Shown here: in pieces, positions 11,200 to 22,870 of the stretch | Numbering within the stretch: the stretch's first letter is position 1 | Layout of the letters: each line of letters begins with the position of its first letter | Origin: Podarcis tiliguerta | Lineage: Eukaryota | Assembly: GCA_965153285.1 (NCBI GenBank) | Contig: OZ229110.1 | Direction: 5' to 3' (one strand) | Length of the DNA: 64,000 nucleotides | Program-made: the position numbers and the translations under genes | Notes under the pieces: model-generated | What the model saw: only the letters and a program-made list of their open reading frames with translations | Told to the model about the DNA's origin: nothing | The model's database searches: none

Positions 11200-12010
11200 G
11201 TGGAGAGCAGACGAGGGCGCCGGGAGAGGAACGAGCCGCCCCGTCGGAGAGAAGCAGCAGGGGTAGCAGGGTGGGGCAATAGGAGCTGCCCAGGAAGCAG
11301 CAAAAGGGGACGCGGGGCTGGGAGGGACGCAGTCCTTGGCTCCCCCCACCCGCAGCCACCTCCGTCTCCTCCTCCTCCTCCTCTGTCGGGGCAGGGCGGG
11401 GACTCGGAGCCCCGCTGGCCGGGCAGAGCGCGCGGAGCTGCTGCGGGGCGCACGGCGAGGGCTCCAGCCGCCCCATGGCCCCGCTGCTGTTGGCGCTGGC
11501 CGCTGCCTCCCTCGCTTGGCCGTGCGCGGCCGCCCCGTCGGGGAACCGCTTCTCCGAGGCGCGGGTGGCGCGCTGGGCGGCGGCGGCGCTTCGGCACGTG
11601 GCGGCGGCGCAGTGTCCCGAGCGCGGCGGGCTCTTGCCGCGGCCGCAGTGCCAGCGCCTGGCGCGCCTTTCCCAGGGCCCTGGGCCCGCCGTCTATGTCT
11701 CCGAGCCCGCCCGCCCGGGCCACAAGGTGCGGGCGCTGCTGCCCGACGGCTGGGGAGACTGGCCCGGCGCTCCGCCCTTCGTGGCCGGCCGCAACCAGAG
11801 CAGCAGCCCGCTGCGCCCCACCGGCGCGCCCCCCGCGCAAGACGCCATCCTGGTGCTGGACCCCACCCCGGGCGCCAACTTCGGCCACCCGCTCCTTCTC
11901 TTCTATGTCGACTTCAACGTCAGCCCGCGCCGGTGCCGGAGCCGCGACAGCCTCTACGTGGGTAAGTGAATGCCGCATCCTTGGGCCACGCGCGCTCCGT
12001 GGACGACCAC
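11200..12010. promoter_or_regulatory. CpG island over promoter/first exon of the novel gene
   Basis: Very high GC and CpG density against a CpG-depleted background; contains GGGCGG boxes upstream of ATG 11475. Confidence 0.75.
11475..11961 (+). CDS. Novel gene exon 1 (signal peptide, N-terminal domain)
   Basis: ATG in gccgccccATGG context; hydrophobic leader; donor G|GTAAGT at 11961/11962. Confidence 0.9.
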
Positions 12011-21000: not shown

Positions 21001-22870
21001 CCTTTGCAGTGGGTGCTCGCCCTGTCTTGCTCTTCCCCATTTAATCCGCTCCTTTTAACTCCCAGGCAGTGGAATCCCCTTGATCTCCCAACTGTGGAGC
21101 GGGGAGGGGTGTGCGTGTGTGTCCGTGACCAAGGGGCAGGTGCTGATGAGCTGTCCCTTCCCTGCAACAGGCAGATCCTAAGGAGCGGTACCCCATCTCG
21201 GAGCTGCTAGCAGACTTGGAGAGCTGCAACGCTCGCCGGGTTCTCCTCTTCCTTGACCAGAGCTATCCGGGGCCACTGACAAAGAAGCTGCGGGCATCAC
21301 GGCGCCATCCCAACGTGGTGCTCATACGTAGCACCACCACCGCGACTGCCACCACTACCGCCAGCGGTGGGTCGGCTTTTGCCGAGTTCTGGGCCGGACT
21401 GCAGCCTGACCAGTGCCTCCTCCAGCATTTGTTGCCGGTAAGTGCCGTGGAAGGAAGGTGAGCCGTGATTGTTCGGAGTCCAAGGCGTGGTGTTTGCAGA
21501 GAATAGGAACGTAAGGAGTCAGGCTAATTGTCCAATGTTGTCTACTCTGGCAGTGGCTCTCAGGTTTCATGTTGCCTGCTGTCAGGTCCTTTTAACTGGG
21601 GACACCGGGTTTCGAACCTGGTACCTTCTGCCTGCATATGCTCTGCCACCAATTTATGGTCCCTCAAGAGATGGCAAGAATGCATTTGTTTGTTCTGGAC
21701 ATAAATACCAGGAGGCTCAAAATAGTGACTAGGAAGCCCGTCCTCAAATTGCTTTTGGCAGGTGGCATTAGCAACAGGTGTCTCTCCAGTTCAAAGTGGC
21801 TGCTTCTAGTGGCAGCATCACTAACTGGGTGGCAGCAGTCCCTGGGCTCTACTCCCAGTTCCAGGGGAGGGGAGCGGAGAGTAGGGACATTGGTGCTTAG
21901 CCAATTAACATAGATGAAAACTGGCCTGAGCTGTGCAGCAAGTTCAGGGCAGATCACAGCTCCTGGTAAGGCCAAGCCATCTTATGCACCATCTTGCAAC
22001 CAGTTTGGTTTCTCCTGTGTGTGTAGGGAAAGAGTTGGGAATCAATTGGGCAGCACGGCAGACTGAGAAATAAATGCTTAGGTGTAGAGGCAGCAATGCT
22101 GAAAACTAGAACTTGGCAAATGGCCAGAGCCAACCTTTGCTCATGTAACTGACACACACGCCATCTGTGATGACAATTAGAGAATGACATCTGAAGTTTG
22201 TGGAAGGTAGCTTGCACTAAAGGAGTCTTTTGATGTGCAATATGGCACCTTTGGAAAGAAAAATGGGTGTTTTGTTACATCCCACCCAATTAGTTTTACT
22301 GCTCAAAAACAGACCATTGCCATTAAAAGGAAAAGGAGTGTACATTCAAGGTAGTTTGAACTGATTTTTTAATCAAGTGCAATGGATCCAGGCTAAATTG
22401 GTTAATTCCAAGTGATGGCACAGGGTTGGATGCAACAAACTAAAGGAAGTCACTGAAACTTACCATTTTTAAGAGCATGTGGAAGCCAGCCAGGCAGGCT
22501 TAATTCAGTTTGCTTTACTGGCCATCCTTACAGGCCGATTGTATAAGATACTGAGATAATGTACCTGAAACACTGATGCGTTGGAAGTGCTATATAAGCA
22601 TTAATGCTGATGACAGATTGAGTTGTGGCCCAGGGCAACCTTAAGTGAAGCAATCTCTCTCGTTCCTTGCAGGTGGGTCCGTGGTCTGCAGTCTTTGGCT
22701 CGGGCACCCCAGCCCAGTTGCTCAATGTCTCATTAGCAGGGGCACCCTGCCACTCTGTGCCACCCCTGGGGGAAGAGGAGCGCCAGCGCCGCTACCAAGG
22801 CTGCCAGAACCTTCCCACCATGTTGTGGTACCAGAGCAGGCACCAGCAGCTGCAACAGGACGACGACTGA
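11475..22870 (+). CDS. Uncharacterized secreted protein, 544 aa, 7 exons: signal peptide + Cys-rich N-terminal region + catalytically degenerate clan CD/C13 (legumain-like) domain
   Basis: Exons 11475-11961, 15565-15771, 16730-16900, 17571-17702, 19065-19237, 21171-21437, 22673-22870 (487+207+171+132+173+267+198=1635 nt, open, ends TGA). Intron phases 1,1,1,1,0,0 all compatible; GT donors (4 of 6 are GTAAGT) and pyrimidine-tract CAG acceptors. ATG sits in a CpG island; AATAAA at 23410-23415. N-terminus MAPLLLALAAASLAWPCAAA is a typical signal peptide; HAVLIAGGW..YPRHAQNLLLFYQMLRRNGFRQEHIKAFF resembles the legumain N-terminal strand/helix. Confidence 0.9.
15003..15520 (+). mobile_element. L2-clade LINE 3' fragment (degenerate ORF2)
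   Basis: [42 protein letters not shown] motifs with frameshifts. Confidence 0.75.
15565..15771 (+). CDS. Novel gene exon 2 (basic stretch, RIRR furin-type site)
   Basis: ttctttgcctgcag acceptor; GYECLIPAQRSRCENQLKRRPGRGKGRSQRSAGRIRREEPPVGLCEIHFLPMVVVAQDPKHLQRLNCV; G|GTAAGT donor. Confidence 0.88.
15922..16090 (+). mobile_element. tRNA-derived (MIR/CORE-like) SINE
   Basis: A-box tggcgcagtgg, B-box ggttcagatcc, CORE-like ccttgggccagtcactgtctctcagcctaacctacct; inverse copy at about 49258-49460. Confidence 0.6.
16730..16900 (+). CDS. Novel gene exon 3 (Cys-rich linker, start of C13-like domain)
   Basis: ttttctttcccag acceptor; DLRGYSPCPEPL..YCELNKNTRRCHRQQLPLYKSCRMYQTCDHAVLIA; G|GTGAGA donor. 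Confidence 0.9.
17571..17702 (+). CDS. Novel gene exon 4 (RH motif helix)
   Basis: ttctcccccag acceptor; GGWQEQVTYPRHAQNLLLFYQMLRRNGFRQEHIKAFFASEGQAS; G|GTACCA donor. Confidence 0.88.
17798..18298. mobile_element. Probable non-autonomous DNA transposon
   Basis: tagggctgg ... ccagcccta terminal inverted repeats with repeated gatatatc subterminal motifs; TSD not clean. Confidence 0.5.
19065..19237 (+). CDS. Novel gene exon 5 (His-strand equivalent, first half of EF-hand loop)
   Basis: tcttttctggacag acceptor; [58 protein letters not shown]; |GTAAGT donor. Confidence 0.9.
21171..21437 (+). CDS. Novel gene exon 6 (Cys-strand equivalent)
   Basis: cccttccctgcaacag acceptor; ADPKERYPISELLADLESCNARRVLLFLDQSYPGPLTKKLRASRRHPNVVLIRS..SAFAEFWAGLQPDQCLLQHLLP; |GTAAGT donor. 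Confidence 0.9.
22673..22870 (+). CDS. Novel gene exon 7 (terminal)
   Basis: ctcgttccttgcag acceptor; VGPWSAVFGSGTPAQLLNVSLAGAPCHSVPPLGEEERQRRYQGCQNLPTMLWYQSRHQQLQQDDD*. Confidence 0.86.
   Translation: MGPWSAVFGSGTPAQLLNVSLAGAPCHSVPPLGEEERQRRYQGCQNLPTMLWYQSRHQQLQQDDD

Follow-up and report, generated by a model that had tools for sequence, protein, structure and literature searches.

The window analysed here, a 64,000-nucleotide stretch of contig OZ229110.1 from the lizard Podarcis tiliguerta (GCA_965153285.1), contains on its plus strand, at 11475-22870, a seven-exon gene for a 544-residue protein whose C-terminal domain is modelled with a legumain-like fold. We rebuilt the exon model from the raw sequence by means of open reading frames (ORFs), splice sites and phase compatibility. 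The exons total 1635 nt, corresponding to 544 codons plus a stop, all introns run GT..AG with pyrimidine tracts, and the outgoing exon phases are 1, 1, 1, 1, 0 and 0. An earlier sequence-only reading of the same DNA had proposed an intact gene of this extent and length, and the rebuilt model reproduced it with the frame open throughout. The CpG-island start and poly(A) signal named in that reading were also recovered: the gene begins inside a CpG island (11400-12000, GC content 0.77, CpG observed/expected ratio (o/e) 1.0), and a candidate AATAAA follows the stop codon. A possible exon between 19238 and 21213, with the acceptor at 21214, was dropped; the phase-0 acceptor at 21171 together with the exon at 15565-15771 gives the 544 codons, and the transcripts agree.

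We examined transcription by mapping raw RNA reads from two runs, together with two Logan contig sets, to positions 15500-21499. The results showed that transcript contigs carry the junctions of exons 2-3, 3-4, 4-5 and 5-6 at exactly the predicted bases, all of them GT..AG. One contig, from run X1, is 3379 nt long (depth 27), and the other, from run X8, 2023 nt (depth 13); they derive from two independent studies of one lizard species, and both cover exon 2, joining 15770/15771 to 16729/16730, and the exon 3-4 junction was also found in four raw RNA reads (X24). Since the X1 contig has 246 nt ahead of exon 2 and ~2.2 kb beyond exon 6, the transcript continues on both sides. Of the six junctions at which spliced reads had been anticipated, the outer two, exon 1-2 and exon 6-7, lie outside the mapped stretch and are backed by gapless tiling of an orthologous protein and by agreement of the split codons, as given below. 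The gene is real, intact, spliced and expressed. Very high contig depth (100-350) or raw-read depth was observed over the intronic stretches 16008-16045, 17059-17193, 17815-17849 and 19387-19442, with loose ends on both sides and reads only 90-95% alike. These stretches have the look of dispersed-repeat copies whose transcripts come from elsewhere, and not of pieces of the gene.

The window was searched exon by exon, and a protein of Podarcis muralis, P0179 (RefSeq LOC114602775, 544 aa), served as the stand-in for the full-length product. The seven exons tiled P0179 end to end without gap or overlap (residues 1-162, 164-231, 233-288, 290-332, 334-390, 391-479 and 480-544), with 533 of 540 residues identical (98.7%), including 158 of the 162 in exon 1. 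The split codons yield G163, D232, G289 and V333, the same residues as in P0179, and tblastn of P0179 against the window returned exactly the seven exon pieces. Exon 1 further matched exon-1 ORFs in the DNA of other lizards, with identities of 86%, 69% and 50%. The coordinates of the gene and its landmarks are collected in the table.

Table. Exons and landmarks of the gene for the legumain-like protein; positions count from the first letter of the window.
Feature	Position	Strand	Extent and support	Content
CpG island across gene start	11200-12000	+	GC 0.75-0.77, CpG o/e 0.9-1.0; neighbouring stretches 0.3-0.6	
Exon 1	11475-11961	+	487 nt, residues 1-162 plus 1 base; ATG ORF, GTAAGT donor	Signal-peptide-like N-terminus and the bulk of the N-terminal domain, with the LDPxPxxxFGH motif
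Exon 2	15565-15771	+	207 nt, residues 164-231; phase-compatible AG..GTAAGT exon	Two Cys either side of a polybasic, disordered loop, ~15606-15698
Exon 3	16730-16900	+	171 nt, residues 233-288; 55/56 identical to P0179	Linker rich in Cys (CELNKNTRRC), then strand 1 of the legumain-like domain (CDHAVLIAG)
Exon 4	17571-17702	+	132 nt, residues 290-332	Helix 1 and strand 2 (GW...MLRRNGF...IKAFF)
Exon 5	19065-19237	+	173 nt, residues 334-390	Strand 3 ending YLNSP; Pro373 codon 19184-19186; first half of calcium-type loop from 19217
Exon 6	21171-21437	+	267 nt, residues 391-479; acceptor 21171 in phase 0	Second half of calcium-type loop 21171-21185; strand 4 ending DQSYPG; Ser421 codon 21261-21263
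Exon 7	22673-22870	+	198 nt with stop, residues 480-544; acceptor tract and AG; 65/65 identical to P0179	Last strand and conserved C-terminal tail (NVS sequon, GAPC, GCQNLPT..W)
Coding span of the modelled legumain-like (clan CD) domain	16870-22807	+	Residues ~279-524; VIA-align	
AATAAA, candidate poly(A) signal	23410-23415	+	First canonical hexamer past the stop, 540 nt downstream	

Searched with phmmer against 1.84 billion representatives, exon 6 retrieved 55 relatives, among them a 544-residue protein whose cluster holds RefSeq entries labelled 'uncharacterized protein' from Podarcis muralis, P. raffonei, P. lilfordi, Lacerta agilis, Zootoca and Elgaria. The Elgaria protein (P0005) as query yielded 162 relatives in geckos, snakes, iguanians, turtles, lungfish, bowfin, gar, sharks, rays and many teleosts, the gene carrying the name si:ch211-67e16.11 in fish, and a profile of the invertebrate members yielded 62 further relatives. 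Invertebrate relatives were found in amphioxus, echinoderms, hemichordates, molluscs, annelids, nemerteans, a bryozoan and a cestode, and among arthropods in horseshoe crabs, spiders, ticks, crustaceans, a millipede and a mayfly; Clade-I nematodes had appeared in an earlier search. Other entries, such as LOC103279116 (Anolis carolinensis) and LOC593876 (sea urchin), are, like LOC114602775 and si:ch211-67e16.11, true orthologues; they belong to the same length class and carry the same motifs. A 765-residue protein of Coryphaenoides rupestris (P0028) has duplicated family blocks, probably an assembly or annotation artefact.

None of the family members found carries a precomputed Pfam domain, all entries are labelled 'uncharacterized', and a literature search on the fish gene name, legumain pseudoproteases and C13 non-peptidase homologues found no paper on the family. 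Among the matches listed, no mammal, bird, crocodilian or amphibian entry occurred except for one nr label (Mustela putorius furo), a pattern suggestive of loss. The Mustela label sits in an Oreochromis cluster (P0167) and is probably contamination. The window gene is the lacertid orthologue of an uncharacterized bilaterian family, already predicted in RefSeq without name, domain or function. The gene is not unpredicted, RefSeq listing uncharacterized LOC genes in many species. Its earlier description as a third, uncharacterised vertebrate C13-fold family stands for the fold and for the missing characterisation; the family is bilaterian-wide rather than vertebrate, and it stays below the Pfam threshold for C13.

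We generated an AlphaFold2 model of P0179 from a 35-sequence alignment (predicted local distance difference test (pLDDT) 73, predicted template modelling score 0.76). Low-confidence loops lie at residues 93-118, 174-206 and 246-268, and across the C-terminal domain pLDDT is mostly 78-95, with dips around 300-310, 330-340 and 441-460. This domain was modelled as a central six-stranded sheet (strands 279-288, 321-325, 363-371, 413-419, 439-444 and 483-487) with five main helices, the arrangement that characterises the clan CD fold, and the order of strands and helices is that given for the six strands and five main helices of legumain in a clan CD review (PMC4357240). Foldseek against the PDB placed PIGK at the top (7wld_K, E 5.7e-7), with legumain, caspase-7 and MALT1 next. 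With VIA-align, model residues 275/279-524 were superposed on residues 26-288 of human legumain (Z 16.3, root-mean-square deviation 2.9 Å, 199 aligned), and PIGK (Z 15.9), Arabidopsis metacaspase-4 (Z 15.9) and caspase-6 (Z 13.6) also matched; in total, the structural search returned 362 chains at Z of at least 8. As far as a model can establish it, residues ~279-524 have the clan CD (caspase-hemoglobinase) fold, nearest to legumain and PIGK, in line with the fold anticipated for residues ~283-480.

Profile searches linked the same domain to peptidase family C13. PF01650 was the sole recurrent Pfam family, matching 15 of 35 members at E ≤ 1 (best E 3.2e-5) and 3 of 10 further invertebrate members, in two stretches co-linear with the fold. 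Positions 2-43 of the Pfam profile fall on WAVLLSGGW...MLRRNGF...FYA (octopus P0047, counterpart of exon 4), and positions 151-214 fall on the strand ending DQSYSG and on the next strand (amphioxus P0029 and Lymnaea P0038, counterpart of exon 6). The motifs that had been aligned to legumain by eye are present, and this alignment agrees with where the Pfam profile lands. Compared with the PDB over that region, the family profile matched only legumains, peptide asparaginyl ligases and vacuolar processing enzymes (E 0.36-1.6), and the nearest named language-model clusters were C13 (0.90 and 0.88). PF01650 did not match the lizard protein, Pfam searches with the seven single exons gave nothing useful, the pieces being too short, and the Lymnaea member, compared with PDB sequences by phmmer, had chance matches only. 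Taken together, the sequence comparisons point to C13.

Conservation at the active-site positions was counted over 69 aligned sequences from across Bilateria. After the strand 363-371 comes S372-P373 (motif YLNSP), in which Pro373, present in 68 of 69 sequences, occupies the position of legumain His148. Q420-S421, after the strand 413-419, takes the position of legumain Cys189, with Ser in 62 of 69; position 421 is otherwise Asn in five sequences (four spiders/ticks and a cestode) and Cys in one (horseshoe crab). The PF01650 alignment begins, at position 151, at the start of the strand before Ser421, and D/E419 and Gly424 are kept, as are legumain Glu187 and Gly192. The only other well-kept His of the domain is His436 (62/69), just before strand 5. 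By this alignment, the canonical His/Cys dyad is absent in every member, and action as a peptidase, as the earlier reading might imply, is unlikely with the catalytic His and Cys replaced throughout the family. The reading's match of 'RH' to the S1 pocket of legumain failed as well: at position 299, matched to the pocket Arg, P. muralis has Leu, and just 15 of 35 members have Arg. The Asn at position 421 occurs in the spider members P0221, P0229 and P0233 and in the tick member P0223. The horseshoe-crab paralogue (P0201 / P0256 / P0257; Limulus, Tachypleus) reads ADQCFSG, yet still has Pro in the His position.

The nearly invariant stretch D384-x-N/D-x-N/D-G-x-A-x-x-x-E395 (D384 in 68, N/D386 in 69, N/D388 in 68, G389 in 68 and E395 in 67 of the 69 sequences) is located between strand 3 and helix 3 and as a pattern agrees with the 12-residue EF-hand/DxDxDG loop (D at position 1, D/N at 3 and 5, G at 6, E at 12). 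Its coding sequence is split by the phase-0 junction 19237/21171 seen in the transcripts. Residues 1-19 form the window of highest hydropathy and the sole hydrophobic one, and the hydrophobic N-terminus is kept in orthologues. Beyond residues 1-23, no 19-residue window exceeds Kyte-Doolittle 1.2, and there is no C-terminal transmembrane helix; a signal peptide had been proposed earlier, and hydropathy supports a signal-peptide-like segment. Eighteen Cys outside this segment are conserved at ~94-100% in the 35-sequence alignment, the N497 sequon occurs in 29 of 34 members, and the C-terminus ends QQDDD. The loop between Cys176 and Cys208 is strongly basic, with 18 residues in most invertebrates and 33-55, disordered, in vertebrates; pLDDT falls below 50 at residues 174-206 of the P0179 model, and 33 of 69 members have R-x-K/R-R within it. 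This loop could serve either for cleavage by a convertase or for glycosaminoglycan binding. An extracellular location of the protein would fit these features, and a lumenal or lysosomal one is also possible.

The N-terminal domain was modelled from exon 1 only, which is part of a larger domain (46 sequences, pLDDT 76). No fold match was found for this piece: Foldseek gave nothing below E 6, and the best match in a wide structural search reached Z 3.8. The N-terminal region also had no usable language-model neighbour. His138, in the LDPxPxxxFGH motif, is invariant (69/69), and Asp129 and Asp146 are also conserved in the extended motif LDPxPxxxFGHxxxxFxxD (window 11860-11900, residues ~128-146); the motif may be a metal or ligand site. 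TNFRSF18, the best PDB match of the family profile (E 0.004), covers 32 residues of the LDPxPxxxFGH stretch and was taken as chance. A 201-residue ORF from a metagenome contig (P0004, JGI/ENA) resembles exon 1, with the RW helix, the Cys pair and LDPTPGRPFGHP. A prokaryotic link for the motif finds no support, this sole metagenome match reading as a eukaryotic exon-1 homologue that runs into an intron.

The flanks agree with the place between ZFAND2B and ABCB6 that had been stated for the gene. ZFAND2B-like exons (AN1 finger, ubiquitin-interacting motif) are present at 869-3587 on the plus strand, and ABC-transporter exons lie downstream on the minus strand. They include Walker A (30761-30787), the signature motif (26834-26854) and, ending at 24791, a last exon with a GGxYxxMW motif. 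This arrangement fits ABCB6 placed tail to tail with the gene. The ABCB6-like last exon (24791-25270, minus strand, GGIYSDMW) extends into a long Glu/Gly-rich acidic tail before the stop. A Phrynosoma platyrhinos gene model, P0010 (KAH0621227.1), maps to window 869-3587 and to exons 2, 6 and 7; it is a wrong fusion of ZFAND2B with the gene, an annotation error. This fusion indicates the same neighbourhood and strand in an iguanian.

Based on these results, we propose that the gene encodes a secreted, disulfide-rich, calcium-binding pseudo-legumain that binds a ligand in a retained cleft and is not an active C13 protease. The product would enter the secretory pathway via its N-terminal signal peptide, be stabilised by up to nine disulfides formed by the 18 conserved Cys, and carry N-glycans. 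It would consist of three parts, namely an N-terminal alpha+beta domain, the polybasic disordered loop and the C-terminal domain of caspase-hemoglobinase fold. As the His/Cys dyad is replaced, we take the C-terminal domain to be a pseudo-peptidase; keeping the cleft and the calcium-type loop, it would bind a ligand, probably a protein or peptide, rather than cleave it. The strong conservation of the Pro/Ser site suggests that the cleft is still used. We regard the proposal as a whole as moderately probable, and hold its gene, family and fold parts, on their own, with high confidence.

Several points weigh against this proposal. The signal peptide, calcium binding and secretion are predicted from sequence patterns only. 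The structure was modelled for the P. muralis orthologue, which shares 98.7% identity across the exons, rather than for the window's own joined product, and the Z scores alone do not separate C13 from C14 and the metacaspases. No listed member reaches the PF01650 gathering score of 22.8 bits, the best being 21.3 bits (P0038), and we therefore call the domain C13-like rather than a C13 member. The equivalences of the active-site residues were taken from profile coordinates, predicted secondary structure and ungapped motif alignment, not from model coordinates. Moreover, Ser421 and Pro373 are far more conserved than is usual for dead sites, which argues that the site does something specific, possibly chemistry.

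The main rival explanation builds on this last point and holds that the protein is an active, non-canonical enzyme, a hydrolase or transpeptidase in which Ser421 (Cys in the horseshoe crab) is the nucleophile, with another base and perhaps calcium helping. The Ser is spread over all Bilateria within an almost fixed D-Q-S-Y/F-S-G motif, one paralogue offers a Cys in its place, the acidic residue 419 and Gly424 are kept, and calcium, on which metacaspases depend, activates other clan CD enzymes (PMC4357240). However, the place of the catalytic His is taken by Pro in all but one sequence, and His436, lying before strand 5, would by the modelled topology be at the far edge of the sheet. The Asn found in spiders and a tick cannot be a nucleophile and, being able to replace Ser421, shows that the Ser is not an obligatory one. 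We consider an active enzyme unlikely, and quite unlikely in its most far-reaching form, a Ser-based, calcium-assisted enzyme. Such a serine-type hydrolase or transpeptidase would be the first one built on a legumain fold, extracellular in most bilaterians and dispensable in mammals and birds.

A role as regulator or decoy of true cysteine peptidases, in which a cystatin-like N-terminal domain or the dead cleft binds legumain-type enzymes or their substrates, draws on the wide structural search of the exon-1 domain, where cystatin-fold proteins made up 7 of the top 40 rows (4it7, 4r80, 4lzi, 3ima, 2kxg, 4ccv and 6uio). A helix followed by antiparallel strands in the exon-1 model suits the cystatin topology, and legumain is bound by cystatin E/M, going by the title of PDB 4n6o. 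These rows, however, reached only Z 3.0-3.8, within noise and a lead only, Foldseek returned nothing, the modelled piece is exon 1 of a larger domain, and no cystatin sequence motif or Pfam match was found; we judge this role very unlikely. The idea of a non-functional gene in the lizard, either a decaying or a mis-assembled copy, could appeal to the very low coverage (few reads) in the two raw RNA runs and to the two junctions outside the mapped stretch that were not directly seen. Against it stand the open frame over seven exons with canonical splice sites, the near identity to the P. muralis protein, the retention of residues conserved in the family, and the spliced contigs from two studies, so that it is close to refuted.

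The usual count of C13-type proteins in animals is two, legumain and PIGK. The family described here would add a third, old C13-type branch, conserved among animals as distant as nematodes, molluscs, sharks, turtles and lizards and marked by the fixed non-canonical Pro/Ser site, the calcium-type loop and an N-terminal domain whose exon-1 part has no fold match. Its apparent absence among the listed mammals, birds and amphibians would explain why it was overlooked. The family is a candidate for the pseudoenzyme field and, with a zebrafish orthologue at hand, easy to test; it also offers a domain assignment for hundreds of 'uncharacterized LOC' entries.

The protein is neither LGMN nor PIGK, as the sequence-only reading had concluded: identity over the structural alignments is ~13-16%, there is no prodomain match and no C-terminal transmembrane helix, and an N-terminal region of ~270 residues is added. 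Legumain (LGMN, MEROPS C13, PF01650) is the best structural match and shares the co-linear sub-threshold Pfam signal over strand 1/helix 1 and strand 4/strand 5, the acidic residue two places ahead of the nucleophile position and, as predicted for the lizard protein, a signal peptide and passage through the secretory pathway. It differs at 13-14% identity, His148 being replaced by Pro and Cys189 by Ser, and of its Asn-specific S1 pocket (Arg44, His45, Ser216 and Asp231) the Arg44-His45 pair is not kept in the family. No Legum_prodom match was found with Pfam, and only ~20-55 residues follow the fold, leaving no room for an LSAM prodomain, whereas the lizard protein has its N-terminal region and the calcium-type loop between strands 3 and 4 in addition. 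PIGK/GPI8, the catalytic subunit of the glycosylphosphatidylinositol transamidase and also a C13 protein, is the top Foldseek match (VIA-align Z 15.9) and would share a lumenal orientation behind a signal peptide, but at 13-16% identity the lizard protein lacks both the C-terminal transmembrane helix and the dyad and has other flanking domains. Metacaspases and caspases (C14) have the same fold at nearly the same Z. In contrast to C13, they gave no sequence-level signal, and the loop of the lizard protein is an EF-hand/DxDxDG-like insert rather than the metacaspase site; unlike the cytosolic C14 proteins, the lizard protein would be rich in disulfides and located outside the cell or in a lumen. 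The pseudo-caspase cFLIP gives a precedent for a clan CD fold that functions in the absence of its Cys.

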